Origin: Oculina patagonica
Taxonomy: Eukaryota
Assembly: GCF_052425735.1 (NCBI RefSeq)
Contig: NC_135769.1
Location: 16,988,001-17,052,000 of the forward strand
DNA: 64,000 bases
Direction of reading: 5' to 3'
The translations under genes and the position numbers were made by a program. The notes beneath the pieces were generated by a model. That model was not told the origin of the DNA and did no database searches. It saw nothing but the letters and a program-made list of their open reading frames with translations. How positions within the stretch are numbered: the stretch's first letter is position 1; every line of letters starts with the position of its first letter. Below, piece after piece: positions 9,572 to 39,971 of this stretch.

Positions 9572-10501
9572 TTACAGACGTGTTTCTGTATTATTATGGA
9601 GTTGTTCGATAGTTGCTAACGTAACTTAAGCTTCCCCTGTTCTCATACATTTCTACAGACAAGTTGAGCAATCAGTCCCTGCATCTCCCGTTACTTTATT
9701 ACTCTTTGTAATTGCTGTACATGTGGCCGTTTCTATATTCTGCTGCAGAAAAAAAAAAATGACAAAAAGTTTCTTCCAGAATTCGCTTCGTTAAGTACGA
9801 TTGCTGTCGTGACCATCTCTTCTTTAAATGCTGATGAAAATGAGAATGGTGTTGGTGCCGCTGTGTTACACACGGATTCCTCAGTTCCATTAATTGGTTG
9901 CCCTGTTGTAGGCCCCACATCCACAACAGCTGCCTGTCCTCTTGCTGTTTGCCTTTTCTTGCACAACAACATATCGCGAAGATGTTCACGGAAGCTTTTT
10001 AACCGCATGCTATACACGTCGCCAAATTTACCTTCCTTTCCGCACAAACGTAAGCCAGGTTGATAATACCCCGTGCTCATAAAATCAGGAACATTTATCA
10101 AAAAAGCAAAACTCCATCCAAGAACAATGAAGACTTTTAGACGTCGCCTTGTAAATCTACCGCGCTGGCGAAGCGGATGAATAATGGCAAAGTAACGTTC
10201 AATGGCGATGTAGACCAAGCACAAACTGGACACAGCACCACCAACCCACGCTATAGCTCCGTCTGTGACAAATTTACACAGATATTGACCAGTCTGTCCT
10301 TCGGGGTGGACAATGAATTTAGATTGTATCATAATGTACTGAATACCTATGGACAAGGCAAACATCATGTCGGCGACACCCAAATTGACCAGTAGATAAT
10401 TGAGTGTAGTCTGGCTTATTGAAAAGAACAGTTAAGACGACCAACGTGTTGCCGACCAGGGATATAAGTACAAGGATTGATAACGATACGATAAATATCA
10501 T
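9572..10501 (-). pseudogene. GPCR pseudogene, copy 2 (A/B mosaic)
   Basis: Frameshifting deletion near 10413. In-frame deletion of TM5-TM7 (KFGDV joined to YSMRLK, ~10013). Frameshift in the tail. Confidence 0.9.
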
Positions 10502-11718: not shown

Positions 11719-12634
11719 TAATAACAAGTGTTTCTAAATTTCATTACACAACAGAATTTTCGACCAAGCTTGAAAACATGCAAAAGAGGGCTTTTCTTCC
11801 TGAACAAAAACTGCTTCGAAAACAATAACTACAAATAGTATTTTACCTTGCTTTCTATATCTATAAAAAAGCATTTTTGATTACTTTGGCGCCCTGTCGA
11901 GTTATTATTGGATTTTTTTCATTTTCACAAGACAAAAGGCCTTTTATAAAAAGTTTTACTCCTGCAAAAGTTCGTCGCCACGATTTGTACAATTTATTGC
12001 TCATGGAACGTAACGTGACAATACTTTTACACTTCCTAGGGTCATCACTGATTAATAGATGTGTTTTCAATCAGTATAGCACTGACGCTGGGCATCCGGA
12101 TGGCCTTTTGGTAACTTTCATCTTTTCTCTGTTCTAGAATTGTTGCATTGAGTAAATAGATGCTGGTCTGCTGCCGGCTGTAGCTTGCATCCCTGTGGTG
12201 TTTGCAATTTTTTCTCAAATCTATGTAATGCTTACTACGAACTCGCTTCTAAAGGCGTTCCCACAGCTTTCAGTTCTTTTTCTGCAAAAACGGTTGCTTA
12301 CATAACATAACATAAAACTTTACAGACATGTTTCTGTGTTATTATTGAGTTGCTGGCTTGCATTAGCCTTTAAAGTTGCTAAAGCACCTAAAGCTTTTTC
12401 ACTTTTTATATTTTCCTGAAGACAAGTTGAGCAATAAGTCCCAGCTTCTCCTGTTACTTCTTTACACTCTGTAAATGTTGTGAATGTTGCCGTTTCTTTT
12501 TTCCCTACTTCTGCTGCAGTGCCACAAATTGTCAAAGATTTTCTTTTGGATTTCACCACGTTGAGTGACGTTTCCGTCGTGGTAATTCCTGCTGAGGAAA
12601 ATGAGAATGGTGTTGGTGCTGCTCTATTACGTGC

Positions 12635-13585
12635 TTATTCCTCAGATCCATTGCTTGGTTGCCCTGTTGCAGGCCCCACATGCACAACACCTGCCTGTCC
12701 TCCGGCTGTTTGCTTTTTCTTGCACAACAACATGTCACGGAGATGTTCACGGAAACGTTTCATACGCATGCTGTACAACACCGGATTAATACAAGCGTTG
12801 AAGGTTACCGATAATGTACCACTTTTATCGTACCACGAACCCATAACCACTCCACCCCAGGATTTTAAGACGTAAACTGTCAAGTTTGGAATCCAGGAGA
12901 CTGCGTATATTACGCTGACTGTAATCAGCGTTGTGGTAACTTGCTTGCGATACCGAAGCGCAGCCTTCTGGGAAGCTTCTAAATTCTCGGCTGGCTTGAA
13001 CCACAAGTGATGCACTACTCTGGTATACAGGTATACCATGATGCCTACAGGAATTATGCCTGCTAGAATAATCCAAACCATACTGTCTACTTTGGCCTCC
13101 ACGTCGCCAAATTTACCTTCCTTTCCGCAAAAACGTAAGCCAGGTTGATAATACCCCGTGCTCATAAAGTCAGGAACATTTATCAAAAAAGCAAAACTCC
13201 ATCCAAGAACAATGAAGACTTTCAGACGTCGCCTTGTAAATCTACCGCGCTGGCGAAGCGGATGAATAATGGCAAAGTAGCGTTCAACAGCGATGTAGAC
13301 CAAGCACAGAATGGATACAGCACCACCAACCCACGCTATAGTTCCGTCTGTGAAAAATTTGCACAAATATAGGCCTGTCTGTCCTTGGGGGTGGGCAATG
13401 GACGGCATTATAATATACTGTATACTTATGGACGAGGTGAACATCATGTCGGCGACAGCTAAGTTGACCAGTAGATAATTGAGCGTAGTCTGCATGGGCT
13501 TGTTGAGAAGGACAGTTAAAACTACCAGCGTGTTGCCGACCAGGGATATAAGTACAAGGGTTGATAACGCCACGATGAATAACAT
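12635..13585 (-). CDS. Class A GPCR copy 3 (type B); 316 aa to TAA, frame stays open to 12320
   Basis: Full 7TM, ERY, NPVLY. 104 further open codons ending TETCL*. Confidence 0.9.
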   Translation of the reverse strand: MLFIVALSTLVLISLVGNTLVVLTVLLNKPMQTTLNYLLVNLAVADMMFTSSISIQYIIMPSIAHPQGQTGLYLCKFFTDGTIAWVGGAVSILCLVYIAVERYFAIIHPLRQRGRFTRRRLKVFIVLGWSFAFLINVPDFMSTGYYQPGLRFCGKEGKFGDVEAKVDSMVWIILAGIIPVGIMVYLYTRVVHHLWFKPAENLEASQKAALRYRKQVTTTLITVSVIYAVSWIPNLTVYVLKSWGGVVMGSWYDKSGTLSVTFNACINPVLYSMRMKRFREHLRDMLLCKKKQTAGGQAGVVHVGPATGQPSNGSEE

Positions 13586-14648
13586 CTTAACAAGTATTCA
13601 AAGTCACTTTGATCTAAAAGTGAAAACACAAAATGAGAAATTTGCTTCTCTCACTAAATAAAATCAGTGCAGATATTGCATGCACCTACATATCTAAACC
13701 ACCTTGAACGAGGAACTGAGTGACGAGCGAATAACGTCGAATACGAACAAATAAAAACGAGTCCTGGAATATAGCGTCAGCCCGAGCGTATCGACCTACC
13801 AAACTTTCTCTAATGTTTATGTTATAGGTAGTCTAAGTACATTACTGTGTTCTGATTTTATATAATTCGCGAAAGAGAACCTGTAATACTTCCCTCCAAC
13901 CACACCAATACCATCTATTAGCAAATAAGAGAGAGTTTGTAGAAAAAAACCTTTGCAAATACCCATTAAGCTGGATCAGCGTCATGAAACGTATCATATT
14001 TTTCAATCTAAAAGTACAGTTGCATCCAAAAGTAAGAACGAGGATCTCCTCCTTTTTGAAAATTTTGCGGTGAAGCCTACTTACGATTTCACGAATGGCG
14101 GCAAATGTTACGGTACACCATCGAAAACCTTTTCGCCTCGTAATGACCAAAGTGTATAGATTGTATTCATTAAAAGGACTACAATTGACTCTAACCTCCA
14201 AACAAAACTAAACAAAAAAGGCACAAAACAAATGAAGAAATGATGAGGTTTTTTATTGCTCAGCAGTCCTTATTTATCTTTCTTTATAACGCTGAATAAA
14301 CATCTGTTATTATATTTAAATGATTTTTTTATTTTCTTGTGCTTGGCTACACGATCAGTTGACACAATTTGTAGCCGAACTGTTCATGATCAGTTACCTT
14401 TTTGTAAAACAAGCTTTTCTGGATTACGTTTAACAAACAGCGAAAATTTGGACCAAGCTTGAAAACATACTGTATAGATGAGAACTTTTTTCCCGAACAA
14501 GAAACACTCAACAATCTATTCATACAAATACTATTATCATTGTTTTGAATTTCCGTAACCATTAACACTGTTTAAATAATTTTGACGTCTTACTGAGGTT
14601 TTATTCGATTTTTCATTTCTCAAATCAATAGGCCTTCATAAGAAGTTA

Positions 14649-15422
14649 CTAGTAATACGTGACTCGCAGGGCCTCGCGAAGCTCTGGGTTGGGGAGGGGG
14701 GGAGGGTTATAAATAAGGAGTGGATTATTTGAAGTTGAACATTAATTGAATTGTACATATTCAATTTTCCACAGTAGGCAGGAAGATATATTTGTTAGAA
14801 ATTTTATTTCAACTGGCATGGCGGCGACACCCTCGTTCTCAGGGTCTACTCCGCTTTAAAGATGGTGGCTTTTTCTGGTTCGTAAAGAGGTATAAAGCGT
14901 TGGGAAGCGCAGGCTATTTTCAAAATCATCGACAAATTATTGGATATTCGCATTTTGGACATTTATTTGATGGCACAAAAAAAAAAGAACGAACGGCAGG
15001 AGGATTCGAAGCCTCCGCCCGCGCGCCCCTGATGGCGATGAAAGGTTTATAGCCTGAATAGGCGTTGAGGGAGTATTATGTGGAAATCAATGTTATTTTA
15101 ATCCGAAAAGAAAAACGATAAAAATGAAAGGCTCAGGATTCGAACCCACAAAAAAAAGGAAAAAAAAAAGAAAAAAAAAACCCTAGCCGGATTCGAACCC
15201 CCGACCTCAGGTCCGAAGATCTGATTTCAAGTTCGACGCCTTACCATTAGGCCACCTGCGCGCGGCGGCCGTGTGACGTCATTTCCGCCACACACCAAGC
15301 TCACAAATATAGAAATATATATGACCGTAAACTCCACACGAGATTTCATCCCGCCTGATCCCTTTGAGGGACAAAATTATACACCCCGCTACGCTCGGCC
15401 TTCGGCCTCGCTTCGCGAGGAA
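14649..15422 (-). mobile_element. Non-autonomous Helitron/Helitron2-type rolling-circle element
   Basis: Inserted at A|T with no TSD (empty site gaagtta|taaacatg at ~22271). Minus strand reads TTCCTCGCGAAGC...CTAG. Asymmetric inverted repeat CCTCGCGAAGC. GGCCGAAGGCC hairpin. Confidence 0.75.
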
Positions 15423-16815
15423 TAAACATGCAAACTGTTATTATACACAGGAAGCGAATGCACAAGACCCTTGCCAAGGTTTTAACAATTCATTTCCTCC
15501 CAAGAGGGAAAACACTCAAGTAACGTGGCCATAATAGTATTTTACATCCCTCAGGTTCAAGACTAGTTCTAAGCATTGATAACTAAGCATAACTAAGCAT
15601 AAGAATGAACGTTTAAAGATGTACGTTATATAGAGGCGTGTTTTCAATTTGTGAAGATCTTTACTATTGCATTGGCTTGGATGGCTTTTTCGTAACTTTG
15701 ATATTTTCTTTTTTGTAAAATTATTGCATGGAGATGCTGTTAATAAAACACTGTATTGACTTTCGCCTGTCAGGATTCCACAAATCTGTCATTTTAATTT
15801 ACCTTGAAAGTGCAAATTTAATTTATCGGCGGCTAGGGTCTCTTTGGTGGTCTGTATGGGCCTGTATGTCAATCTGTTATCATAAGACTGAACTGACATC
15901 TTGACAGCAATATTGTATTCTCCACCGTTAACAGGAATGAGCTTTTCTTTTTCATTAGGTAACGTTTTCTTCTTGCCTAAGCATAACCACACGCAAAAGC
16001 ATAACTAGTAAGCATATCCTTAAGCATAAGCCCATTTAAAGAAGGAGCAGGCACATTCATTTCACTTGCGCTGTCTTCACTAGGAATATGCATAAGGAAA
16101 GGAAGAAGAATTTCTCTTTTGCTTATGCTTATGCCCCTTGAGAAAAGTATAAAAGAATGAGGGCGTTCGCTCTTTTTATGCGCTTATGCTTATTCTTGTG
16201 TTTGTGCTTATACCCAATTAAGCTAGCCTTTAAAGTAAATATACAAGAGTCTTGCATTTTGCAAAATTTCAATTTCCCTTATCATGGCTGACAAAGAAGA
16301 GGCTGATTGACTCTTTTTTTTCCATCTTACTGGTGAAGATTCACTTCACTGTGGTTATTATGCCATGCCGAAGTCTACGCCCGGCAATTTGGCTAGTTCG
16401 CTATGGCAGAAAGAGTTGTCCATATGGTTGTTTAAAAATGAACGGTCTTATTGGAATAAAGCTAAAATTTATAGACAAAAGTCACAATACATCGGCAGTT
16501 TCGAAGGCTCATATTTCTTGCGAACATCGCGATAGCCTAGCTTTCGGTACACATACCAGATAAAGAATCTCTTAAAGTGACCACTTGTAATCGACAACAA
16601 TGCATGGGATCATTTCATCAATCTGTGTTCTTTAACAGTGGTACCAAGTGCCTTAAATGTCCTTTAACAGCATTGTTCAAAAGGGCATCAATAAAACTGA
16701 GACAGTTATTTACCCGATTTAAGGCGCACTCAATACTGCGCGGCAACAACTTCGCTGCAAACCGTTCAAAAGGACAATTCCTACAACTTCCATCTTTTTT
16801 TTTAAGGTTGATTAC

Positions 16816-18069
16816 TTACAGACATGTTTCTGTGTTATTATGAAGTTGTTCGATAGTTGTTAATATACCTAAAGCGTCCCCAGTTCTCATATATTCCTGC
16901 AGACAAGTTGCGCAATCAGTCCCTGCGTCTCCCGTTACTTTATTACTTTTTGTAATTGCTGTACACGTGGCCGTTTCTATATTCCCCGTGTCTGCTGCAG
17001 CAACAGACAATGGCAAAACGTTTCTTCTAGAAGTTGCTTCGTTCAATATGATTTCTGTCGTGACCATCTCTTCTTTAAATGCAGATGAAAATGAGAATGG
17101 TTTTGGTGCTGCTGTGATACACACCGATTCCTCAGTTCCATTAATTGGTTGCCCTTTTGTGGGCCCCACATCCACAACAGCTGCCTGTCCTCTGACTGTT
17201 TGCCTTTTCTTGCACAACAACATATCGCGAAGATGTTCACGGAAGCTTTTTAACCGCATGCTGTACAACACCGGATTAACACAAGAGTTAAAGGTGAGCA
17301 ATAATGTACCACTCTTGTCGAACCACGAACCAACAACATCTCCACCCCAGGACACCACGACGTAAGCTGTCAAGTTTGGAATCCAAGAAGCTGCATAGAT
17401 CACGCTGACTGCAATCAGCGTTATGGTAACTTGCTTTCGATACCGATGCGAAGCCCTCTGGGAAGCATCTAAATTCTCGACTGTATTGAACCACAGGTGA
17501 TGCACAACTCTGGAGTACAGGAACACCATGATGCACACAGGAACTATGCCTGCTAGAACCATCCAAACCAGGCTGTGCACTTTGTCTACGGCGCCAAGGT
17601 TGCCGCAACTTTTGCACAAACCTAAGTTAGGTTGATAATATCTGGTCATAAAGGTAGGTATATTAATCAATAAAGCAAATGTCCATGCAAGGGCGATGAA
17701 GACCTTCAGACGTCGCCTTGTAAATCTACCGCGCTGGCGAAGCGGGTGAATAATGGCAAAGTAGCGTTCAATGGCGATGTAGACCAAGCACAAACTGGAC
17801 ACAGCACCACCAACCCACGCTATGGCTCCGTCTGTGACAAATTTACACAGGTATTGACCAGTCTGTCCTTCGGGGTGGACAATGAATTGCATCATAATGT
17901 ACTGAATACCTATGGACAAGGCGAACATCATGTCGGCGACAGCCAAATTGACCAGTAGATAATTGAGTGTAGTCTGCATGGGATTTCTGAAAAGAACAGT
18001 TAAAACGACCAACATGTTGCCGACCAGGGATATAAGTACAAGGATTGATAACACCACGATAAATATCAT
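16816..18069 (-). CDS. Class A GPCR copy 4 (type A, full tail, 417 aa)
   Basis: Intact 7TM ORF ending NNTETCL. Confidence 0.92.
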   Translation of the reverse strand: MIFIVVLSILVLISLVGNMLVVLTVLFRNPMQTTLNYLLVNLAVADMMFALSIGIQYIMMQFIVHPEGQTGQYLCKFVTDGAIAWVGGAVSSLCLVYIAIERYFAIIHPLRQRGRFTRRRLKVFIALAWTFALLINIPTFMTRYYQPNLGLCKSCGNLGAVDKVHSLVWMVLAGIVPVCIMVFLYSRVVHHLWFNTVENLDASQRASHRYRKQVTITLIAVSVIYAASWIPNLTAYVVVSWGGDVVGSWFDKSGTLLLTFNSCVNPVLYSMRLKSFREHLRDMLLCKKRQTVRGQAAVVDVGPTKGQPINGTEESVCITAAPKPFSFSSAFKEEMVTTEIILNEATSRRNVLPLSVAAADTGNIETATCTAITKSNKVTGDAGTDCATCLQEYMRTGDALGILTTIEQLHNNTETCL

Positions 18070-18259
18070 GATAACACGAAAGCAGATCCACTTTGATCTA
18101 AAAGTGAAAACACATTATTACAAATCAATGATAGCTTTTCTCACTAAAAGCGATCAGTGCAGATATTGCAATTCAACACGTACCTACACATCTGAGCCAA
18201 GTACATCGATTTTTCACCATAATAATAACATATCTGACAGGCGATTATGAAATTTTAAT

Positions 18260-19907: not shown

Positions 19908-21173
19908 TTACAGACATGTTTCTGTGTTATTATTGAGTTGCTGGCTTGCATTAGCCTTTAAAGTTGCTAAAGCACCTAAAGCTTTTTCACTTTTTATATT
20001 TTCCTGAAGACAAGTTGAGCAATAAGTCCCAGCTTCTCCTGTTACTTCTTTACACTCTGTAAATGTTGTGAATGTTGCCGTTTCTTTTTTCCCTACTTCT
20101 GCTGCAGTGCAACAAATTGTCAAAGATTTTCTTTTGGATTTCACCACGTTGAGTGACGTTTCCGTCGTGGTAATTCCTGCTGAGGAAAATGAGAATGGTG
20201 TTGGTGCTGCTCTATTACGTGCTTATTCCTCAGATCCATTGCTTGGTTTCCCTGTTGCAGGCCCCACATGCACAACAGCTGCCTGTCCTCTGACTGTTTG
20301 CTTTTTCTTGCACAACAACATGTCACGGAGATGTTCACGGAAACGTTTCATCCGCATGCTGTACAACACCGGATTGATACAAGCGTTAAAGGTTACCGAT
20401 AATGTACCACTTTTATCGTACCACGAACCCATAACTACTCCACCCCAGGATTTTAAGACGTAAACTGTCAAGTTTGGAATCCAGGAGACTGCGTATATTA
20501 CGCTGACTGTAATCAGCGTTGTGGTAACTTGCTTGCGATACCGAAGCGCAGCCTTCTAGGAAGCTTTTAAATTCTCGGCTGGCTTGAACCACAAGTGATG
20601 CACTACTCTGGTATACAGGTATACCATGATGCCTACAGGGATTATGCCTGCTAGAATAATCCAAACCATACTGTCTACTTTGGCCTCCACGTCGCCAAAT
20701 TTACCTTCCTTTCCGCACAAACGTAAGTCAGGTTGATAATACCCCGTGCTCATAAAGTCAGGAACATTTATCAAAAAAGCAAAACTCCATCCAAGAACAA
20801 TGAAGACTTTTAGACGTCGCCTTGTAAATCTACCGCGCTTGCGAAGCGGATGAATAATGGCAAAGTAGCGTTCAACAGCGATGTAGACCAAGCACAGAAT
20901 GGATACAGCACCACCAACCCACGCTATAGTTCCGTCTGTGAAAAATTTGCACAAATATAGGCCTGTCTGTCCTTGGGGGTGGGCAATGGACGGCATTATA
21001 ATATACTGTATACTTATGGACGAGGCGAACATCATGTCGGCGACAGCTAAGTTGACCAGTAGATAATTGAGCGTAGTCTGCATCGGCTTGTTGAGAAGGA
21101 CAGTTAAGACTACCAGCGTGTTGCCGACCAGGGATATAAGTACAAGGGTTGATAACGCCACGATGAATAACAT
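19908..21173 (-). pseudogene. GPCR copy 5 (type B) with nonsense mutation in ICL3
   Basis: CAG>TAG at 20556-20558. Otherwise colinear with copy 3, including the TAA at 20223. Confidence 0.88.
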
Positions 21174-23692
21174 CTTAACAAGTATTCAAAGTCACTTTGA
21201 TCTAAAAGTGAAAACACAAAATGAGAAATTTGCTTCTCTCACTAAATAAAATCAGTGCAGATATTGCATGCACCTACATATCTAAACCACCTTGAACGAG
21301 GAACTGAGTGACGAGCGAATAACGTCGAATACGAACAAATAAAAACGAGTCCTGGAATATAGCGTCAGCCCGAGCGTATCGACCTACCAAACTTTCTCTA
21401 ATGTTTATGTTATAGGTAGTCTAAGTACATTCCTGTGTTCTGATTTTATATAATTCGCGAAGGAGAACCTGTAATACTTCCCTCCAACCACACCAATACC
21501 ATCTATTAGCAAATAAGAGAGAGTTTGTAGAAAAAACCTTTGCAAATACCCATTAAGCTGGATCAGCGTCATGAAACGTATCATATTTTTCAACCGAAAA
21601 GTACAGTTGCATCCAAAAGTAAGAACGAGGATCTCCTACTTTTTGAAAATTTTGCGGTAAAGCCTACTTACGATTTCACGAATGGCAGCAAATGTTACGG
21701 TACACCCTGAAGAAGAATTCACGGTATCGAAAACCTTTTCGCCTCGTAATGACCAAAGTGTATAGATTGTATTCATTATATTTTCATTATAAAAGCTGAC
21801 TGTTTTTTAAAAGGACTACAATTGACTCAACCTCCAAACAAAACTAAACAAAAAAGGCAGAAAACAAATGAAGAAATGATGAGGTTTTTTATTGCTCAGC
21901 AGTCCTTGTTTATCTTTCTTTATAACGCTGAATAAACATCTGTTATTATATTTAAATGATTTTTTATTTCCTTGTGCTTGGCTACACGATCAGTTAGCAC
22001 AATTTGTAGCCGAACTGTTCATGATCAGTTACCTTTTTGTAAAACAAGCTTTTCTGGATTACGTTTAACAAACAGCGAAAATTTGGACCAAGCTTGAAAA
22101 CATACAGATGAGAACTTTTTTTCCCGAACAAGAAACACTCAACAATCTATTCATACAAATACTATTATCATTGTTTTGTATTTCCGTAACCATTAACACT
22201 GTTTAAATAATTTTGACGTCTTACTGAGGTTTTTAGATTTTTTATTTCTGAAATCAATAGGCCTTCATAAGAAGTTATAAACATGCAAACTGTTATTATA
22301 CACAGGAAGCGAATGCACAAGACCCTTGCCAAGGTTTTAACAATTCATTTCCTCCCAAGAGGGAAAACACTCAAGTAACGTGGCCATAATAGTATTTTAC
22401 ATCCCTCAGGTTCAAGACTAGTTCTAAGCATTGATAACTAAGCATAACTAAGCATAAGAATGAACGTTTAAAGATGTACGTTATATAGAGGCGTGTTTTC
22501 AATTTGTGAAGATCTTTACTATTGCATTGGCTTGGATGGCTTTTTCGTAACTTTGATATTTTCTTTTTTGTAAAATTATTGCATGGAGATGCTGTTAATA
22601 AAACACTGTATTGACTTTCGCCTGTCAGGATTCCACAAATCTGTCATTTTAATTTACCTTGAAAGCGCAAATTTAATTTATCGGCGGCTAGGGTCTCTTT
22701 GGTGGTCTGTATACGCCTGTATGTCAATCTGTTATCATAAGACTGAACTGACATCTTGACAGCAATATTGTATTCTCCACCGTTGTGGAGAATACAATAT
22801 TGTTTCTTTTTCATTAGGTAACGTTTTCTTCTTGCCTAAGCATAACCACACGCAAAAGCATAACTAGTAAGCATAACCTTAAGCATAAGCCCATTTGAAG
22901 AAGGAGCCGGCACATTCATTCCACTTGCGCTGTCTTCACTAGGAATATGCATAAGGAAAGGAAGAAGAATTTCTCTTTTGCTTATGCTTATGCCCCTTGA
23001 GAAAAGTATAAAAGAATGAGGGCGTTCTTTCTTTTTACGCGCTTATGCTTATTCTTGTGTTTGTGCTTATACCCAATTAAGCTAGCCTTTAAAGTAAATA
23101 TACAAGAGTCTTGCATTTTGCAAAATTTTATGTTATTTCAATTTCCCTTATAGTGGCTGACAAAGGAGAGGACGATTGACTCTTTTTTTCCATCTTACTG
23201 GTGAAGATTCACTTCATTGTGGTTATTATGCCATGCCGAAGTCTACGCCCGGCAATTTGGCTAGTTCGCTATGGCAGAAAGAGTTGTCCATATGGTTGTT
23301 TAAGAATGAACGATCTTATTGGAATAAAGCTGAAATTTATAGACAAAAGTCACAATACATCGGCAGTTTTCGAAGGCTCATATTTCTTGCGAACATCGCG
23401 ATAGCCTAGCTTTCGGTACACATACCAGATAAAGAATCTCTTAAAGTGACCACTCAAACCTTGTAATCGACAACAATGCATGCGATCATTTCATCAATCT
23501 CTGTTCTTTAACAGTGGTACCAAGTGCCTTAAATGTCCTTTAACAGCATTGTTCAAAAGGGCATCAATAAAACTGAGACAGTTATTTACCCGATTTAAGG
23601 CGCACTCAATACTGCGCGGCAACAACTTCGCTGCAAACCGTTCAAAAGGACAATTCCTACAACTTCCATCTTTTTTTTTTAAGGTTGATTAC

Positions 23693-24949
23693 TTACAGAC
23701 ATGTTTCTGTGTTATTATGAAGTTGTTCGATAGTTGTTAATATACCTAAAGCGTCCCCAGTTCTCATATATTTCGCAGACAAGTTGCGCACTCGATCAGT
23801 CCCTGCGTCTCCCGTTACTTTATTACTTTTTGTAATTGCTGTACACGTGGCCGTTTCTATATTCCCCGTGTCTGCTGCAGCAACAGACAATGGCAAAACG
23901 TTTCTTCTAGAAGTTGCTTCGTTAAATATGATTTCTGTCGTGACCATCTCTTCTTTAAATGCAGATGAAAATGAGAATGGTTTTGGTGCTGCTGTGATAC
24001 ACACCGATTCCTCAGTTCCATTAATTGGTTGCCCTTTTGTGGGCCCCACATGCACAACAGCTGCCTGTCTTCTGACTGTTTGCCTTTTCTTGCACAACAA
24101 CATATCACGGAGATGTTCACGGAAACTTTTTAATCGCATGCTGTACAAGACCGGATTAACACAAGAGTTAAAGGTGAGCAATAACGTACCACTCTTGTCG
24201 AACCACGAACCAACAACATCTCCACCCCAGGACACCATGATGTAAGCTGTCAAGTTCGGAATCCAAGAAGCTGCATAGATCACGCTGACTGCAATCAGCG
24301 TTATGGTAACTTGCTTTCGATAGCGTAGTGCAGCCCTCTGGGAAGCTTCTAAATTCTCGACTGTATTGAACCACAGGTGATGCACAACTCTGGAGTACAG
24401 GAACACCATGATGCACACAGGAACTATGCCTGCTAGAACCATCCAAACCAGGCTGTGCACTTTGTCTACGTCGCCAAGGTTGCCGCCACTTTTGCACAAA
24501 CGTGAGTTAGCTTGATAATATCTGGTCATAAAGGTAGGTATATTAATCAATAAAGCAAATTTCCATGCAAGGGCGATGAAGACCTTCAGACGTCGCCTTG
24601 TAAATCTACCGCGCTGGCGAAGCGGATGAATAATGGCAAAGTAGCGTTCAATGGCGATGTAGACCAAGCACAAACTGGACACAGCACCACCAACCCACGC
24701 TATAGCTCCGTCTGTGACAAATTTACACAGGTATTGACCAGTCTGTCCTTCGGGGTGGACAATGAATTGCATCATAATGTACTGAATACCTATGGACAAG
24801 GCGAACATCATGTCGGCGACAGCCAAATTGACCAGTAGATAATTGAGTGTAGTCTGCATGGGCTTTTTGAAAAGAACAGTTAAAACGACCAACGTGTTGC
24901 CGACCAGGGATATAAGTACAAGGATTGATAACGATACGATAAATATCAT
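23693..24949 (-). CDS. Class A GPCR copy 6 (type A, 418 aa)
   Basis: Intact ORF with a short compensated frameshift in the tail. Confidence 0.9.
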   Translation of the reverse strand: MIFIVSLSILVLISLVGNTLVVLTVLFKKPMQTTLNYLLVNLAVADMMFALSIGIQYIMMQFIVHPEGQTGQYLCKFVTDGAIAWVGGAVSSLCLVYIAIERYFAIIHPLRQRGRFTRRRLKVFIALAWKFALLINIPTFMTRYYQANSRLCKSGGNLGDVDKVHSLVWMVLAGIVPVCIMVFLYSRVVHHLWFNTVENLEASQRAALRYRKQVTITLIAVSVIYAASWIPNLTAYIMVSWGGDVVGSWFDKSGTLLLTFNSCVNPVLYSMRLKSFREHLRDMLLCKKRQTVRRQAAVVHVGPTKGQPINGTEESVCITAAPKPFSFSSAFKEEMVTTEIIFNEATSRRNVLPLSVAAADTGNIETATCTAITKSNKVTGDAGTDRVRNLSAKYMRTGDALGILTTIEQLHNNTETCL

Positions 24950-25139
24950 GTTAACACGAAAGCAGATCCACTTTGATCTAAAAGTGAAAACACATTATTA
25001 CAAATTAATGATAGCTTTTTCGGCACTAAAAGCGATCAGTGCAGATATTGCAATTCAACACGTACCTACACATCTGAGCCAAGTACATCGATTTTTCACC
25101 ATAATAATAACATATCTGACAGGTGATTATGAAATTATA

Positions 25140-25425
25140 AAAGGACTATGTGGAGCCATACTGCTGGAGCTTTTACTGGTTTCTTAAGCATTAAGCGACT
25201 AGAAGAAGTGTTTCTACTCCCTCCTGGATGGGATGCAAGTCCATCGCAGGGTTATCCCTAGCATTAAACCGCCATACCTATTTAAACACCTGGGTGTAGA
25301 GAGGCACTATAAAGGTAACACGTCTTGCCCAAGAAACCACACATGCAATGATCCCGGCCAGGGCACGAACCCGGACCTCTCGAACCGGAGTCCATCGTAC
25401 TAACCATTAAGTCACAGCGTCTTCC
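25140..25425 (-). mobile_element. tRNA-derived SINE (duplicated with the unit)
   Basis: Near-identical to 18260-18545 in the same position. Confidence 0.8.
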
Positions 25426-26017
25426 ATATCTTGTATATATTAGGTGGTCCTTATTTCAAATACATAACTGTGTTCTGGTGTGAAATTCCCGTTAAGCCCG
25501 CGAATATTACAAAAAAATTCGGAAAGAGAACCTGTTTTAAATAACTCCCTCCAGCTGATGAATACCATCTATTACCAAGTAAGAGAGAGGATATTCAAAT
25601 CAGTGCTTCTTTTACCTACCTTAACGCTTGGCTGCAAAGAGCCCATACCGTTGCTTTCAACGTTATAATAGGTACAATTTTTCCAACCGAAAAGTACAGT
25701 TACATCCGAAATAAACAACGAGGGTCTTTTCTTTTGGAACTGTCTAAATAATGTAAAAAGAAAATTAAAAATTTTGCGGTCGAACCTACTTACGATTTCA
25801 CGAATGACGACAAATGGTACAGCACGGCTTGAAAAGCACTGTGTTGGAAGAAGAAATGCTTCTGTGATGCAAAGCTTTGGTTTTAAATTACTGATTCCAA
25901 AGCCTTTTCGCCTCTTTATGTACAGAAACATTAATTTGAATTCATTATTGTCTTCCTTTAAGTACTGTTTTTAGAAGGACTGCAATTGACTCAAGCTCCA
26001 AACAAAGCTAAACAAAA

Positions 26018-27113
26018 TCAAAGGCGCTTTGTTAGCCCACTCGTGAATGAGAATACTAAATGTATTGGTGTAGAGCTATGAAATGATTCTGTCTTTTTGT
26101 GAGCGGCATGTTAATATAGAAGTTGTTTGAAGGGAGATATGATCACGTTGGTTCCTTGTGTTTACAGCGGACGCGGGTAATCCATTCAAAAGCCTTCGTT
26201 ATATAACACTAATTTCTACCATAAAGTGCAAGCTTGCAAACGCGTTGAGTAGTGGCAATGCGTTGGCCCTCCAGTCCAGCGGCCCGGGTTCGATTCTCAG
26301 CAGGGACGATTAATTTTTTTTTTACGACAATCTATTTTACAATTTTATACGACGTCTTTTTTTTTCTTTCTCCTTTTTTTATGAATCTATTAGAGATGCA
26401 AATCAAGTACTATACAGTATATTATTAAAAGGCAACAAAATTCGTCAGTTTGGCGAGCTTTTTTACGATAAATTATTTACGTATCATGACTATCGATTAT
26501 CATACAATACGCTTGGAACTATAAAACATTCAGAGACTGCTAAAATTTGACTTTATTCATACAATTGTCCTGAGATCAACCTTTTAATACCCAACACAGT
26601 CGCAGTCCACAGTTCGTGCCTGGAAAATCTAAAAATTCGATCAAAACACGGAATGTCAGTTCAGTGTTTCGAAGATTTTCATATTTTCTCTAAGATTATT
26701 TCTTCTATTTGTCATGTGAAATTCTTAAGAGCTATAAATCGAGCCATTCGAAGAAGCTTTACATACAAGCCATTTAACTTTGAACCTACGGTATCGGTAA
26801 TCGTACTAACAACAACACAAAGAAATCTATATGCTAATTTTCAGCCCAAATGATCAGTACGCCGAAGTTGTCAAGCGGTAGGGGGTTTGGTCTTCAAAAA
26901 CATAGTTGATGTTAGGAGTCGCCGGTTCAAACCTCAGAAGTGTGAAACAAAAAGTTTAAAAAAAAAACAAGGAAAATTAATTTATAATTTAATGCATAAA
27001 TTATTATTCATAAATTAAAGTTAACAGCCCATCGACCGACCGACCGACCGACTGAAAATTTGCATATCACTTTCCATAACCATAACAATACTCGTTTCAT
27101 TACATTCACGAGT
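26018..27113 (-). mobile_element. Helentron-associated non-autonomous element (HINE/DINE-1-like)
   Basis: Inserted in an A-run with no TSD (empty site ~19131). Asymmetric IR ACTCGTGAATG 26039-26049 / CATTCACGAGT 27103-27113. Terminal hairpin CAAAGGCGCTTTG. (CCGA)n microsatellite ~27033-27052. Confidence 0.8.
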
Positions 27114-28228
27114 AAAAAGGAGAAAACAAATGAAGGAATGATGAGAGTCGATATTGTTCAGCGGTCCCTATTTATCTTTTGGGTATAATGCTAAATAAAC
27201 ATTTATTTTATTTCATTTTTAATTAATTTTTCTTACCTCAGTATTTGTCTTCACGATCAGTAGGCAAAATTCGTAGGCACAGTTCATGAAGAATTTTTTG
27301 GTGATAACAAGTGTTTTTGGATTTCATTACACAACGGAGTTTTCGACCAAGCTTGAAAACATGCAAAAGAGGGTTTTCTTCGTGAACAAAAATTGCTTCG
27401 AAAACTATTAGTAGTTTACATGGTTTTTTATATCTATAAGAATAAGCACTTTTGATTACTTTGGCGCCCTGCCGAGTTGTTATTGGATTTTCATTTTCGT
27501 AAGACAAAAGGCCTTTTATAAAAAGTTCTACACCTGCATGCAAAAGACCCTTGACACGGTTTTTACATCTATTTCCTATTAACAGAAAAAGTGCTCATGG
27601 AACGTAACGTGACAATAATTTTACACTTCCTAGGGTCATCACTGAATAATAGATGTGTTTTCAATCAGTATAGCACTGACGCTGGGCATCCGGATGGCCT
27701 TTTGGTAACTTTCATCTTTTCTCTGTTGTAAAATTGTTGCATTGAGTAAATAGATGCTGGTCTGCTGCCGGCTGTAGCTTGCATCCCTGTGGTGTTTGCA
27801 ATTTTTTCTCAAATCTATGTAATGCTTACTACGAACTCGCTTCTAAAGGCGTTCCCACAGCTTTCAGTTCTTTTTTTGCAAAAACGGTTGCTTACATAAC
27901 ATAACATAAAACTTTACAGACATGTTTCTGTGTTATTATTGAGTTGCTGGCTTGCATTAGCCTTTAAAGTTGCTAAAGCACCTAAAGCTTTTTCACTTTT
28001 TATATTTTCCTGAAGACAAGTTGAGCAATAAGTCCCAGCTTCTCCTGTTACTTCTTTACACTCTGTAAATGTTGTGAATGTTGCCGTTTCTTTTTTTCCT
28101 ACTTCTGCTGCAGTGCCACAAATTGTCAAAGATTTTCTTTTGGATTTCACCACGTTGAGTGACGTTTCCGTCGTGGTAATTCCTGCTGAGGAAAATGAGA
28201 ATGGTGTTGGTGCTGCTCTATTACGTGC

Positions 28229-29179
28229 TTATTCCTCAGATCCATTGCTTGGCTGCCCTGTTGCAGGCCCCACATGCACAACACCTGCCTGTCCTCTTGC
28301 TGTTTGCTTTTTCTTGCACAACAACATGTCACGGAGATGTTCACGGAAACGTTTCATCCGCATGCTGTACAACACCGGATTAATACAAGCGTTGAAGGTT
28401 ACCGATAATGTACCACTTTTATCGTACCACGAACCCATAACCACTCCACCCCAGGATTTTAAGACGTAAACTGTCAAGTTTGGAATCCAGGAGACTGCGT
28501 ATATTACGCTGACTGTAATCAGCGTTGTGGTAACTTGCTTGCGATACCGAAGCGCAGCCTTCTGGGAAGCTTCTAAATTCTCGGCTGGCTTGAACCACAA
28601 GTGATGCACTACTCTGGTATACAGGTATACCATGATGCCTACAGGGATTATGCCTGCTAGAATAATCCAAACCATACTGTCTACTTTGGCCTCCACGTCG
28701 CCAAATTTACCTTCCTTTCCGCACAAACGTAAGCCAGGTTGATAATACCCCGTGCTCATAAAGTCAGGAACATTTATCAAAAAAGCAAAACTCCATCCAA
28801 GAACAATGAAGACTTTTAGACGTCGCCTTGTAAATCTACCGCGCTGGCGAAGCGGATGAATAATGGCAAAGTAGCGTTCAACAGCGATGTAGACCAAGCA
28901 CAGAATGGATACAGCACCACCAACCCACGCTATAGTTCCGTCTGTGAAAAATTTGCACAAATATAGGCCTGTCTGTCCTTGGGGGTGGGCAATGGACGGC
29001 ATTATAATATACTGTATACTTATGGACGAGGCGAACATCATGTCGGCGACAGCTAAGTTGACCAGTAGATAATTGAGCGTAGTCTGCATGGGCTTGTTGA
29101 GAAGGACAGTTAAAGCTACCAGCGTGTTGCCGACCAGGGATATAAGTACAAGGGTTGATAACGCCACGATGAATAACAT
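28229..29179 (-). CDS. Class A GPCR copy 7 (type B); 316 aa to TAA, frame stays open to 27914
   Basis: Near-identical to copy 3. Confidence 0.9.
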   Translation of the reverse strand: MLFIVALSTLVLISLVGNTLVALTVLLNKPMQTTLNYLLVNLAVADMMFASSISIQYIIMPSIAHPQGQTGLYLCKFFTDGTIAWVGGAVSILCLVYIAVERYFAIIHPLRQRGRFTRRRLKVFIVLGWSFAFLINVPDFMSTGYYQPGLRLCGKEGKFGDVEAKVDSMVWIILAGIIPVGIMVYLYTRVVHHLWFKPAENLEASQKAALRYRKQVTTTLITVSVIYAVSWIPNLTVYVLKSWGGVVMGSWYDKSGTLSVTFNACINPVLYSMRMKRFREHLRDMLLCKKKQTARGQAGVVHVGPATGQPSNGSEE

Positions 29180-31693
29180 CTTAACAAGTATTCAAAGTCA
29201 CTTTGATCTAAAAGTGAAAACACAAAATGAGAAATTTGCTTCTCTCACTAAATGAAATCAGTGCAGATATTGCATGCACCTACATATCTAAACCACCTTG
29301 AACGAGGAACTGAGTGACGAGCGAATAACGTCGAATACGAACAAATAAAAACGAGTCCTGGAATATAGCGTCAGCCCGAGCGTATCGACCTACCAAACTT
29401 TCTCTAATGTTTATGTTATAGGTAGTCTAAGTACATTACTGCGTTCTGATTTTATATAATTCGCGAAAGAGAACCTGTAATACTTCCCTCCAACCACACC
29501 AATACCATCTATTAGCAAATAAGAGAGAGTTTGTAGAAAAAACCTTTGCAAATACCCATTAAGCTGGATCAGCGTCATGAAACGTATCATATTTTTCAAT
29601 CTAAAAGTACAGTTGCATCCAAAAGTAAGAACGAGGATCTCCTCCTTTTTGAAAATTTTGCGGTGAAGCCTACTTACGATTTCACGAATGGCGGCAAATG
29701 TTACGGTACACCATGAAGAAGAATTCACGGTATCGAAAATCTTTTCGCCTCGTAATGACCAAAGTGTATAGATTGTATTCATTATATTTTCATTATTAAA
29801 GCTGACTGTTTTTTAAAAGGACTACAATTGACTCTAACCTCCAAACAAAACTAAACAAAAAAGGCAGAAAACAAATGAAGAAATGATGAGGTTTTTTATT
29901 GCTCAGCAGTCCTTATTTATCTTTCTTTATAACGCTGAATAAACATCTGTTATTATATTTAAATGATTTTTTTATTTTCTTGTGCTTGGCTACACGATCA
30001 GTTGACACAATTTGTAGCCGAACTGTTCATGATCAGTTACCTTTTTGTAAAACAAGCTTTTCTGGATTACGTTTAACAAACAGCGAAAATTTGGACCAAG
30101 CTTGAAAACATATAGATGAGAACTTTTTTCCCGAACAAGAAACACTCAACAATCTATTCATACAAATACTATTATCATTGTTTTGAATTTCCGTAACCAT
30201 TAACACTGTTTAAATAATTTTGACGTCTTACTGAGGTTTTATAAGATTTTTCATTTCTCAAATCAATAGGCCTTCATAAGAAGTTATAAACATGCAAACT
30301 GTTATTATACACAGGAAGCGAATGCACAAGACCCTTGCCAAGGTTTTAACAATTCATTTCCTCCCAAGAGGGAAAACACTCAAGTAACGTGGCCATAATA
30401 GTATTTTACATCCCTCAGGTTCAAGACTAGTTCTAAGCATTGATAACTAAGCATAACTAAGCATAAGAATGAACGTTTAAAGATGTACGTTATATAGAGG
30501 CGTGTTTTCAATTTGTGAAGATCTTTACTATTGCATTGGCATGGATGGCTTTTTCGTAACTTTGATATTTTCTTTTTTGTAAAATTATTGCATGGAGATG
30601 CTGTTAATAAAACACTGTATTGACTTTCGCCTGTCAGGATTCCACAAATCTGTCATTTTAATTTACCTTGAAAGCGCAAATTTAATTTATCGGCGGCTAG
30701 GGTCTCTTTGGTGGTCTGTATGCGCCTGTATGTCAATCTGTTATCATAAGACTGAACTGACATCTTGACAGCAATATTGTATTCTCCACCGTTAACAGGA
30801 ATGAGATTTTCTTTTTCATTAGGTAACGTTTTCTTCTTGCCTAAGCATAACCACACGCAAAAGCATAACTAGTAAGCATAACCTTAAGCATAAGCCCATT
30901 TGAAGAAGGAGCCGGCACATTCATTCCACTTGCGCTGTCTTCACTAGGAATATGCATAAGGAAAGGAAGAAGAATTTCTCTTTTGCTTATGCTTATGCCC
31001 CTTGAGAAAAGTATAAAAGAATGAGGGCGTTCGCTCTTTTAATGCGCTTATGTTTATTCTTGTGTTTGTGCTTATACCCAATTAGCCTAGCCTTTAAAGT
31101 AAACATACAAGAGTCTTGCATTTTGCAAAATTTTTATGTTATTTCAATTTCCGTTATAGTGGCTGACAAAGACGAGGACGATTGACTCTTTTTTTCGAGC
31201 TTACTGGTGAAGATTAACTTAACTGTGGTTATTATGCCATGCCGAAGTCTACGCCCGGCAATTTGGCTAGTTCGCTATGGCAGAAAGAGTTGTCCATATG
31301 TTGTTTTTAAGAATGAACGGTCTTATTGGAATAAAGCTGAAATTTATAGACAAAAGTCACAATACATCGGCAGTTTTCGAAGGCTCATATTTCTTGCGAA
31401 CATCGCGATAGCCGCCTAGCTTTCGGTACACATACCAGATAAAGAAACTCTTAAAGTGACCACTCAAACCTTGTAATCGACAACAATGGGATCATTTCAT
31501 CAATCTGTGTTCTTTAACAGTGGTACCAAGTGCCTTAAATGTCCTTTCTACAGCATTATTCAAAAGGACATCAATAAAACTGAGACAGTTATTTACCCGA
31601 TTTAAGGCGCACTCAATACTGCGCGGCAACAACTTCGCTGCAAACCGTTCAAAAGGACAATTCCTACAACTTCCATCTTTTAAGTTTGATTAC

Positions 31694-32953
31694 TTACAGA
31701 CGTGTTTCTGTGTTATTATGAACTTGTTCGATAGTTGTTAATGTACCCAAAGCGTCCCCAGTTCTCATATATTCCTGCACACAAGTTGCGCACTCAGTCC
31801 CTGCTTCTCCCGTTACTTTATTACTCTTTGTAATTGCTGTACATGTGGCCGTTTCTATATTACCCGTGTCTGCTGCATCAACAGACAATGGCAAAAAGTT
31901 TCTTCTAGAATTCGCTTCGTTAAATATGATTTCTGTCGTGACCATCTCTTCTTTAAATGCTGATGAAAAAGAGAATGGTTTTGGTGCTGCTGTGTTACAC
32001 ACCGATTCCTCAGTTCCATTAATTGGTTGCCCTGTTGTGGGCCCGACATGCACAACAGCTGCCTGTCCTCTGACTGTTTGCCTTTTCTTGCACAACAACA
32101 TATCACGAAGATGTTCACGGAAGCTTTTTAATCGCATGCTGTACAAGACCGGATTAACACAAGAGTTAAAGGTGAGCAATAACGTACCACTCTTGTCGAA
32201 CCACGAACCAACAACATCTCCACCCCAGGACACCACGACGTAAGCTGTCAAGTTCGGAATCCAAGAAGCTGCATAGATCACGCTGACCGCAATCAGCGTT
32301 ATGGTAACTTGCTTTCGATAGCGTAGTGCAGCCCTCTGGAAAGCTTCTAAATTCTCGACTGTATTGAACCACAGGTGATGCACAACTCTGGAGTACAGGA
32401 ACACCATGATGCACACAGGAACTATGCCTGCTAGAACCATCCAAACCAGGCTGTGCACTTTGTCTACGTCGCCAAGGTTGCCGCCACTTTTGCACAAACC
32501 TAAGTTAGGTTGATAATGTCTGGTCATAAAGTCAGGAACATTTATCAAAAAAGCAAAACTCCATCCAAGAACAATGAAGACTTTTAGACGTCGCCTTGTA
32601 AATCTACCGCGCTGGCGAAGCGGATGAATAATGGCAAAGTAGCGTTCAATGGCGATGTAGACCAAGCACAAACTGGACACAGCACCACCAACCCACGCTA
32701 TGGCTCCGTCTGTGACAAATTTACACAGATATTGACCAGTCTGTCCTTCGGGGTGGACAATGAATTTAGATTGTATCATAATGTACTGAATACCTATGGA
32801 CAAGGCGAACATCATGTCGGCGACAGCTAAATTGACCAGTAGATAATTGAGCGTAGTCTGCATGGGTTTGTTGATAATGACAGTTAAAACTACCAGCGTG
32901 TTGCCGACCAGGGATATAAGTACAAGGGTTGATAACGCCACGATGAATAACAT
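31694..32953 (-). CDS. Class A GPCR copy 8, B/A chimera (419 aa)
   Basis: Type B upstream region and N-terminus (MLFIVALSTL), type B TM4 patch, type A remainder. Ends TETRL. Confidence 0.9.
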   Translation of the reverse strand: MLFIVALSTLVLISLVGNTLVVLTVIINKPMQTTLNYLLVNLAVADMMFALSIGIQYIMIQSKFIVHPEGQTGQYLCKFVTDGAIAWVGGAVSSLCLVYIAIERYFAIIHPLRQRGRFTRRRLKVFIVLGWSFAFLINVPDFMTRHYQPNLGLCKSGGNLGDVDKVHSLVWMVLAGIVPVCIMVFLYSRVVHHLWFNTVENLEAFQRAALRYRKQVTITLIAVSVIYAASWIPNLTAYVVVSWGGDVVGSWFDKSGTLLLTFNSCVNPVLYSMRLKSFREHLRDMLLCKKRQTVRGQAAVVHVGPTTGQPINGTEESVCNTAAPKPFSFSSAFKEEMVTTEIIFNEANSRRNFLPLSVDAADTGNIETATCTAITKSNKVTGEAGTECATCVQEYMRTGDALGTLTTIEQVHNNTETRL

Positions 32954-36711: not shown

Positions 36712-36899
36712 GTTAACATGAAAGCAGATCCACTTTGATCTAAAAATGAAAACACATTATTACAAATTAATGATAGCTTTTCTCACTAAAAGCGATCAGT
36801 GCAGATATTGCAATTCAACACGTACCTACACATCTGAGCCAAGTACATCGATTTTTCACCATAATAATAACATATCTGACAGGTGATTATGAAATTATA

Positions 36900-37185
36900 A
36901 TAGGACTATGTGGAGCCATACTGCTGGAGCTTTTACTGGTTTCTTAAGCATTAAGCGACTAGAAGAAGTGTTTCTACTCCCTCCTGGATGGGATGCAAGT
37001 CCATCGCAGGGTTATCCCTAGCATTAAACCGCCATACCTATTTAAACACCTGGGTGTAGAGAGGCACTATAAAGGTAACACGTCTTGCCCAAGAAACGAC
37101 ACATGCAGTGATCCCGGCCAGGGCACGAACCCGGACCTCTCGAACCGGAGTCCATCGAACTAACCATTGAGTCACAGCGTCTTCC
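36900..37185 (-). mobile_element. tRNA-derived SINE (duplicated with the unit)
   Basis: Same as 18260-18545. Confidence 0.8.
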
Positions 37186-38696: not shown

Positions 38697-39971
38697 TTAC
38701 AGACACGTTTCTGTGTAATTATTGAGTTGCTGGCTTGCATAAGCCTTGAAAGTTTCGATAGTTGCTAAAGCACCTAAAGCTTTCTCACTTTTCATATTTT
38801 CCTGCAGACAAGTTGAGCAATCAGTCCCAGCATCTACTGTTACTCCTTTACACTCTGTATATAGTGTGCATGTGGCTGTCACTATGTTCCCTTTGTCTGC
38901 TGCAGCGCCACAAATTGTCAAATATTCTCTCCTGGATTTCACTACGTTAAGTGACGTTTCCGTCGTGGTAATTTCTCCTGAGGAAAATAAGAATGGTGTT
39001 GGTGCTGCTGTGTTACGCGCAGATATCTCAGTTCCATTATTTGGTTGCCCTGTTGTAGGCCCCACATGCACAACAGCTGCCTGTCTTCCGACTGTTTGCC
39101 TTTTCTTACACAACAGCATATCACGGAGATGTTCACGGAAGCATTTCATCCGCATGCTGTACAACACCGGATTGATACAAGAGTTGAAGGTTACTGATAA
39201 TCTACCACTCTTATCGTACCACGAACCCATAACCACTCCACCCCAGGATTTTAAGACGTAAGCTGTTAAGTTAGGAATCCAGGAAACTGCGTAGATCAGG
39301 CTGACCGTAATCAGCGTTATGGCAACTTGCTTACGATAGCGTAGTGAAGCCCTCTGGGAAGCGTCCAAATTCTCGACTGGCTTGAACCACAAGTGATGCA
39401 CTACTCTGGAGTACAGGTATACCATGATGCTTACAGGGACTATGCCTGCTAGAACCATCCAAACCAGACTGTCTACTTTGGCCTCGACGTAGCCAAAGTT
39501 ACCGTCACGTTTGCACAAACGTTGGTCGGGTTGAAAATATCTGGTGTCCATAAAGGCAGGCACGTTCATCAAAATAGCAAAACTCCATGCAAGGACGATG
39601 AAGACTTTCAGACGTCGCCTTGTAAATCTACCGCGCTGGCGAAGCGGATGAATAATGGCAAAGTAGCGTTCAACAGCGATGTACACCAAGCACAGAATGG
39701 ATACAGCAGCACCAACCCACGCAATAGCTCCGTCTGTGACAAATCTACACAGGTATCGGCCTGTCTCTCCTTCGGGGTGGGCAATGAATGGCATCATAAC
39801 GTACTGAATACCTATGAATAAGGCGAACGTCATGTCGGCGACAGCTAAGTTGACCAGTAGATAATTAAGCGTAGTCTGCATGGGCTTGTTGATAAGGACA
39901 GTTAAAATGACCAACGTGTTGCCGACCAGGGATATAAGTACAAGGATTGACAACGCCACGATAAATATCAT
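38697..39971 (-). CDS. Class A GPCR copy 10 (divergent, full B-like tail, 424 aa)
   Basis: Intact ORF. Its tail is homologous to the post-stop frames of copies 3, 5, 7 and 11. Confidence 0.92.
   Translation of the reverse strand: MIFIVALSILVLISLVGNTLVILTVLINKPMQTTLNYLLVNLAVADMTFALFIGIQYVMMPFIAHPEGETGRYLCRFVTDGAIAWVGAAVSILCLVYIAVERYFAIIHPLRQRGRFTRRRLKVFIVLAWSFAILMNVPAFMDTRYFQPDQRLCKRDGNFGYVEAKVDSLVWMVLAGIVPVSIMVYLYSRVVHHLWFKPVENLDASQRASLRYRKQVAITLITVSLIYAVSWIPNLTAYVLKSWGGVVMGSWYDKSGRLSVTFNSCINPVLYSMRMKCFREHLRDMLLCKKRQTVGRQAAVVHVGPTTGQPNNGTEISARNTAAPTPFLFSSGEITTTETSLNVVKSRREYLTICGAAADKGNIVTATCTLYTECKGVTVDAGTDCSTCLQENMKSEKALGALATIETFKAYASQQLNNYTETCL

Follow-up and report, generated by a model that had tools for sequence, protein, structure and literature searches.

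The 64-kb stretch of Oculina patagonica DNA examined here (contig NC_135769.1, positions 16,988,001 to 17,052,000; hereafter the window) contains 13 head-to-tail, single-exon copies of a rhodopsin-family G protein-coupled receptor (GPCR) gene, all on the minus strand. In copies 3, 5, 7 and 11, a premature TAA interrupts the reading frame behind the seven-transmembrane (7TM) core, and the cytoplasmic tail that follows stays open for a further 104-108 codons. We found that these stops go back to two different and recent mutations, that the tails behind them evolve close to neutrality and that their openness is what chance would produce. Most probably, they are ordinary young, independent nonsense mutations in a GPCR array that evolves by birth and death, and the sequences behind them are relic tails that have not yet decayed. 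A first-pass annotation of the window had instead proposed either a regulated long/short receptor system, based on readthrough, editing or splicing, or a recent convergent loss of the tail.

Two independent stops in a duplicated array

On sequence grounds, the copies are rhodopsin-family (class A) GPCR. Their Pfam 7tm_1 matches have E values of about 1e-41 overall, with E = 3e-42 and 145 bits in copy 3 and 141 bits in copy 10 (curated cut-off, 30.5), and the receptor alignment contains the ERY (E/DRY-like) and NPVLY (NPxxY) motifs. The features that bear on the premature stops are the following, all on the minus strand.

12638..13585, minus strand: copy 3 body, an open reading frame (ORF) of 316 codons that spans the 7TM core and helix 8 and extends about 30 residues into the proximal tail (from the ORF list and Pfam)
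12635-12637, minus strand: premature TAA of copy 3, codon 317, after ...NGSEE; the ancestral codon is TCN (Ser)
12323-12634, minus strand: post-stop relic tail of copy 3, 104 open codons, ARNRAAPTPF...NNNTETCL, with the terminal TAA at 12320-12322
20223-20225, minus strand: TAA of copy 5, the same inherited stop at codon 317, with its relic tail at 19911-20222
20556-20558, minus strand: extra TAG of copy 5, codon 206 (CAG>TAG), inside the 7TM core
28232-29179, minus strand: copy 7 body
28229-28231, minus strand: TAA of copy 7, the same inherited stop at codon 317, with its relic tail at 27917-28228
42242-43186, minus strand: copy 11 body
42239-42241, minus strand: independent TAA of copy 11, codon 316, after ...NGSA (GAA>TAA, with the preceding codon changed GAG>GCG)
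41915-42238, minus strand: post-stop relic tail of copy 11, 108 open codons, SARNTAAP...NHNIETCL
38697..39971, minus strand: copy 10, full-length receptor (424 aa) whose tail is translated and with which the relic tails are compared

These coordinates bear out the layout described in the first-pass annotation, that is, a TAA followed by an open tail in copies 3, 5 and 7, and a TAA one codon earlier, again followed by an open tail, in copy 11. Its other statements on the tails hold as well: those of copies 3, 5, 7 and 11 match the translated tail of copy 10 at 88-90% nucleotide identity, and the post-stop tail of copy 12 has decayed. A Pfam search with the post-stop tail of copy 3 returned no match, and a tail stretch unique to copies 3 and 7 lies around ...AEVGKKETATFTTFTECK.... 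Copy 5 had been counted among the supporting copies. Its TAG at codon 206, which was overlooked and comes on top of the tail TAA, marks this copy as a clear pseudogene, unable to produce a receptor; its tail is as open as those of copies 3 and 7 despite the stop in the core.

The three stops at codon 317 represent a single event. The pairs formed by copies 3 and 4, 5 and 6, and 7 and 8 are segmental duplicates of ~7.8 kb that are ~96% identical, intergenic DNA included, and the tails of copies 3, 5 and 7 differ by two bases in total (the copy 3 tail is 1 nt from that of copy 7 and 1 nt from that of copy 5). Because of this near identity, copies 3, 5 and 7 provide one data point. The claim that the post-stop frames differ by many substitutions is valid between lineages, since copies 3 and 11 show 34/324 differences plus one 9-nt indel, and fails among copies 3, 5 and 7. 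We also considered whether the lower number of differences in the tail than in the body of these three copies (2 vs 21) is a signal and rejected the idea: local divergence along the duplicated units varies from 2 to 10 differences per 300 nt, a range that includes the tail value, and differences clustered at 12659-12705 raise the count for the body.

The stop of copy 11 has a different origin. The change is GAA-TCN>GAA-TAA in copies 3, 5 and 7 and GAG-GAA-TCT>GCG-TAA-TCT in copy 11, so that different mutations have hit adjacent codons. At the site stopped in copies 3, 5 and 7, TCT is found in copies 10 and 11 and in the A-like copy L003a, and TCG in the B-type copies. For comparison, we used further stretches of the same chromosome (L001, L003 and L004) and one from a related coral (L002); the copy 11 stop is also present in a paralog of the first of these, copy 11' (L001:677-1951). 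In a maximum-likelihood tree of 23 copies, the group formed by copies 3, 7 and 5 is sister to L003a, which retains TCT at the stop site and carries a frameshift and a transposon insertion of its own. The P0014 copy, with an intact GAA-TCN, comes next, and the pair of copies 11 and 11' and copy 1 branch separately. Post-stop branches measure 0.003-0.014 substitutions per site. Since copies with an intact site (L003a and the P0014 copy) fall between these lineages, the stops are independent and each is younger than the nearest paralog splits. Together with the different base changes, this confirms the earlier view of the copy 11 stop as an independent mutation.

Copies 11 and 11' also reveal how a stop may travel. 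According to site patterns, both copies group together over a stretch reaching from the 5' flank to some 56 nt behind the stop; farther on, copy 11 mostly resembles the P0014 copy, its positional duplicate, in patches of the tail and in the whole 3' flank. Divergence between copies 11 and 11' rises from about 1% in the 5' flank and body to 5-9% in the tail and 3' flank, with the break in the region 42180-42240. This break indicates that a gene-conversion tract moved the body plus the TAA between the two copies. Until a very recent time, a sense codon probably preceded most of the copy 11 tail, which makes the openness of this tail still less informative.

We propose that duplication, gene conversion and decay shape the array, and that two recent, independent nonsense mutations would have cost the cytoplasmic tail its ~105 terminal residues. 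The first stop would have arisen in the ancestor of copies 3, 5 and 7 and then spread by segmental triplication of the ~7.8-kb unit. The second would have arisen in the lineage of copies 11 and 11' and passed between both by the conversion tract ending about 56 nt past the stop. Translation would end at the TAA, and the sequence behind it would be an untranslated relic, now part of the 3' untranslated region, that is open only because too few substitutions have landed in it. The 315-316-aa products may be receptors whose short tail is tolerated, or their genes may be on the way to becoming pseudogenes; such a length is typical of the family members of other corals.

Constraint on the tails and the chance of an open frame

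We estimated the ratio of nonsynonymous to synonymous substitution rates (dN/dS, omega) by the Nei-Gojobori method. The comparison of post-stop tails with translated tails of the copy 10 type, which the first-pass annotation had named as a check, gave similar values in both classes. Tail omega ranged from 0.5 to 0.9 in all comparisons, translated or post-stop, and body omega from 0.2 to 0.6. Among translated pairs, the tail value was 0.63 for copies 10 and 4, 0.91 for copies 10 and 9, and 0.50 for copies 4 and 9; the post-stop pair of copies 3 and 11 gave 0.55. Among copies sharing a stop, body omega was 0.24-0.38. The tail appears to be dispensable or weakly constrained.

The tails of copies 11 and 11' show 18/324 differences, 5 synonymous (S) and 13 nonsynonymous (N), with an omega of 0.82 and an S fraction that does not depart from neutrality (P=0.43). 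Compared with the body of both copies (9/945), the tail diverges six times as fast, and its rate does not fall below that of the 3' flank (42/478, P=0.10). The body differences among copies 3, 5 and 7 are 10 S:11 N (P=0.013 vs neutral); six of the 10 synonymous states are shared with other paralogs and may have been acquired by conversion. Body changes unique to these copies are 4 S:8 N and look neutral (P=0.30).

To polarise the tail differences, copies 10 and 13 and the B-type copies were used, and the resulting counts are upper bounds for post-stop change. Sixteen substitutions (6 S:10 N) are specific to the lineage of copies 3, 5 and 7 and 10 (4 S:6 N) to that of copy 11, while 8 could not be assigned. 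In these tails, about 4-5% of single substitutions create a stop. In simulations, 16-20 substitutions left the tail free of stops with a probability of 0.4-0.6 and 10-14 substitutions with one of 0.6-0.75, and the joint probability that both lineages stay open is roughly 0.25-0.45, which is unremarkable. Open tails are expected by chance behind stops this young. The sole tail indel is a 9-nt deletion in copies 3, 5 and 7, which may have come before or after the stop.

Two further copies illustrate the same point. Copy 10' (L001:12967-14241), which matches copy 10 at 98% identity, carries an AAA>TAA change at codon 375 (K375), and the remaining ~49 codons of its tail are open. This fresh stop with an open remainder, and the dead core with an open tail in copy 5, indicate that open 'ghost' tails are the normal look of young stops in this array. 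Each tail is also overlapped on the plus strand by an antisense ORF of 131-197 codons (window 12480-12875 and equivalents). We examined these ORFs as candidates and rejected them as a by-product of composition (synonymous-redraw P 0.09-0.36).

Several observations weigh against the reading of the tails as decaying relics. Tail omega is nominally below 1 (about 0.5-0.8), not significantly so, with 10 S:16 N over the two lineages and P=0.43 for copies 11 and 11'; the mosaic that conversion has left in the tail means that the latter comparison does not cover post-stop change in the strict sense. The 9-nt deletion is in frame and no frameshift has occurred in either lineage, which suits weak maintenance as well as it suits chance. 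Moreover, each stop came about through two clustered changes, and both pairs fall in one 9-nt stretch; the coincidence is mildly unusual, although this stretch is variable in all copies. Finally, the sequencing runs labelled 'RNA?' that cover copy 3 are DNA-like, and hence set no direct bar to translation past the TAA.

Recurrent tail truncation and rival explanations

Loss of the tail is not limited to the two stops described above. In a census of 22 O. patagonica paralogs on this chromosome, only copies 4, 6, 8, 9 and 10 (5/22) retain a complete tail. In 11/22, the tail is truncated behind an intact 7TM core; these copies go back to nine independent events at codons 297, 298, 316, 317, about 337, 375, 393, 397 and about 400, and the core itself is damaged in 6/22. 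The tail was the first part to be hit in 9 of 15 cases, compared with the 30% expected from its share of the length (P=0.014), so that tail-first lesions are over-represented. Selection acts, or acted until recently, more strongly on the core than on the tail. The adjacency of the stops at codons 316 and 317 was considered as a sign of a hotspot or target and rejected, since nine events on 125 codons give at least one adjacent pair with a probability of 0.60.

This recurrence may suggest that tail loss is adaptive, that is, that selection favours receptors without the Ser/Thr-rich tail and the C-terminal T-x-L, for instance in relation to desensitisation or trafficking, so that stops recur and purifying selection continues to act on the 7TM core. 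In line with this idea are the excess of tail-only first lesions, the 11 copies with an intact core and a truncated tail, the low body omega among stop-sharing copies, the spread of the copy 11 stop by gene conversion, and the fact that short members (305-335 aa) are common in other corals. However, a dispensable tail combined with purifying selection on the core alone gives the same pattern. The truncation sites are scattered over codons 297-400 instead of being targeted, the body changes unique to copies 3, 5 and 7 look neutral, any synonymous excess can be imported by conversion, and copy 5 later lost its core. We consider adaptive loss unlikely. What stands of the convergent tail loss put forward in the first-pass annotation is that it is recent, independent and recurrent, with two stops here and nine truncations among 22 paralogs, whereas nothing shows that it was adaptive rather than tolerated. 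A different concern is that the TAAs might be absent from the DNA of the animal owing to assembly or sequencing errors, to which we give practically no credence. Nothing positive speaks for such errors, and contig pieces from the read runs do not visibly bridge 12635-12637. Against them, one TAA occurs in three separately assembled copies (3, 5 and 7) and the other in two (11 and 11'), the changes are substitutions instead of homopolymer-length errors, and no alternative letter at 12635-12637 is among the differences listed for four runs.

The remaining alternatives would all restore the tail in part of the products. Exitrons are introns within a protein-coding exon that are removed in only some transcripts. 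Copies 3 and 7 have a candidate segment of this kind.

12592..12690, minus strand: candidate 99-nt in-frame GT...AG segment spanning the copy 3 stop, donor CAG/GTGTTG, acceptor ttttcctcag/C

Removal of this segment from some transcripts of copies 3 and 7 would delete 33 codons, the TAA included, and restore a long receptor ending in ETCL. The boundaries are present, the length is a multiple of three, and the donor G goes back to one derived change that both copies share. Yet the donor is weak, as GTGTTG matches none of positions +4 to +6 of GTAAGT, and the acceptor is ordinary coding sequence (FSSA) kept in all copies, stop-free ones included. Copies 5, 11 and 11' have GCT at the donor, so the segment is confined to one lineage and cannot explain the second. 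At modest thresholds, no reasonable in-frame GT-AG pair spanning the stops was found in the stop-bearing copies. The splice joint is absent from all four read runs over 12200-18150 (three labelled 'RNA?' and one unlabelled), although these runs have an even, low depth that is equal in genes and intergenic DNA, a DNA-like pattern that is uninformative on transcription. Neither splice joints in the genes nor pile-ups of read starts or ends are seen in them, and the runs labelled 'RNA?' reach very high depth only at the repeat 14588-15582. A search limited to RNA-Seq libraries listed no run containing this stretch. Some ab initio gene models (e.g. P0003, P0016) splice around tail lesions, without support from the RNA evidence seen. 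Altogether, rescue by splicing seems very unlikely. Programmed readthrough or A-to-I editing of the UAA, either of which would yield a minor long isoform with a tail rich in phosphorylation sites and a PDZ-ligand end, is in our judgement even harder to credit. Its attractions are the in-frame, open tails of 104-108 codons, which share the ETCL end with the full-length paralogs, the tail omega nominally below 1, and the vertebrate precedents OPRL1 and OPRK1 (PMC4132726). The readthrough signal of these receptors is a deeply conserved UGA-CUAG, and in the same GPCR study changing UGA to UAA cut readthrough about 6-fold (PMC4132726). The coral stops read UAA-GCA in copies 3, 5 and 7 and UAA-UCU in copy 11. 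Neither lies in a known leaky context (UGA or UAG with C at +4, CUAG, CARYYA, 3' structure), and no unusually stable RNA structure was detected 3' of them (fold z = -1.2 and +0.85). Furthermore, the stops are young, neither stop nor context is conserved, the nearest paralogs have sense codons, the extension has an S:N ratio indistinguishable from neutral, and chance explains the openness. To turn UAA into a sense codon, A-to-I editing would have to change two bases and would require a double-stranded partner, and the window, in which all copies have one orientation, offers none. The regulated long/short system of the first-pass annotation thus finds no support from any of these routes, from dN/dS, which is the same in translated and post-stop tails, or from copy 5, whose tail is open as well. 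It is correspondingly very improbable that copies 3 and 7, and separately copy 11, make both a short-tail and a minor long-tail ETCL receptor, through removal of the 99 nt or low-level readthrough of the UAA, by a switch that would have arisen twice. If this were true, the array would carry a built-in isoform switch.

Like OPRL1 and OPRK1 (PMC4132726), the coral genes consist of a GPCR ORF followed by an in-frame open extension. Unlike them, the stop is UAA-G or UAA-U, young and not conserved, and the extension is a relic of the ancestral tail, 104-108 codons long and under no significant coding constraint. Copies 3 and 7 resemble exitron-bearing genes in having an in-frame GT...AG segment within the coding exon, the removal of which would delete the stop; in contrast to exitrons, the donor is weak, only one lineage is concerned, and the acceptor is accounted for by coding sequence common to all paralogs. 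Birth-and-death evolution with frequent pseudogenes is well established for olfactory, vomeronasal and taste receptor arrays. It has also been described in invertebrate expansions of class A GPCR (PMC11886862). The coral array shares with these systems a single coding exon per copy, head-to-tail order and multi-gene segmental duplication, as well as gene conversion, chimeric copies, scattered retrotransposons, and nonsense, frameshift and transposon lesions specific to single copies. It differs in the enrichment of lesions in a long cytoplasmic tail, which leaves many intact 7TM cores with tails of varied length.

As ordinary nonsense mutations, the two stops matter little as such. They illustrate that young nonsense mutations in recent duplicates leave long, open 'ghost' frames that are seemingly maintained, and that segmental duplication and gene conversion can turn a single event into apparent replicates. 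For the annotation of the O. patagonica genome, it is of modest value to know that the full tail is present in only 5/22 paralogs. If the short-tail copies were expressed and functional, they would provide a natural tail-length series of one receptor for studies of desensitisation and trafficking in cnidarians.

Chimeric copies and the surroundings of the array

The window is part of a tandem array of roughly 160 kb made up of lineage-specific, rhodopsin-class genes resembling neuropeptide receptors, and further paralogs are located on the same chromosome (CM126646.1, GCA_052425735.1). Within the window, the minus-strand ATGs of copies 1 to 13 are at 7031, 10383 (a fragment), 13585, 18069, 21173, 24949, 29179, 32953, 36711, 39971, 43186, 47016 and 57428. 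The array consists of recent tandem and segmental duplicates in a single orientation that carry differing disabling lesions, i.e. nonsense mutations, frameshifts, deletions and transposon insertions. Protein searches gave hits assigned to the stony coral Oculina patagonica itself, where annotators call the paralogs 'QRFP-like peptide receptor', 'allatostatin-A receptor-like' and the like. They also detected relatives in other scleractinians, many of them only 305-335 aa long (e.g. an Orbicella protein of 318 aa), with tails of variable length and little conservation.

Exchange between receptor types is visible in other copies. Copy 8 (31694-32953) is a patchwork of A-type segments (the N-terminus, VLGWSFAFLINVPDFM) and B-type segments, and copy 2 (9733-10383) has the IQSKF insertion of copy 8 and a deletion of TM5-TM7. 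This patchwork and the shared insertion point to gene conversion or unequal crossing-over between receptor types. In copy 6, codons ~383-395 (about 23765-23803, minus strand) read GTDRVRNLSAKYM where relatives have GTD-CATCLQEYM. The tail of this copy looks like a compensated +1/-1 frameshift that restores the frame up to the ETCL end, and this restoration hints that the far C-terminus matters in full-length B-type copies.

Each copy begins at TM1 (MxFIV...) right from the ATG, without an extracellular N-terminus, and the deposited gene models use the same start. A ttttag is located about 28 nt upstream of each ATG (window 13586-13620 in copy 3), and a 5' exon may exist. A very high-copy repeat of 774 bp (window 14648-15422) separates copies 3 and 4 and is missing from the two sister duplication units. 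Its word depth in a DNA run is 20,000-40,000, compared with about 45 in the flanks, and one contig of run X11 skips it. Lastly, an ORF of 553 aa (window 61342-63003, minus strand) looks like a typical reverse transcriptase from a non-LTR retrotransposon, and a similar endonuclease/reverse transcriptase gene lies within the array in L001, adjoining the 5'-truncated P0014 copy.

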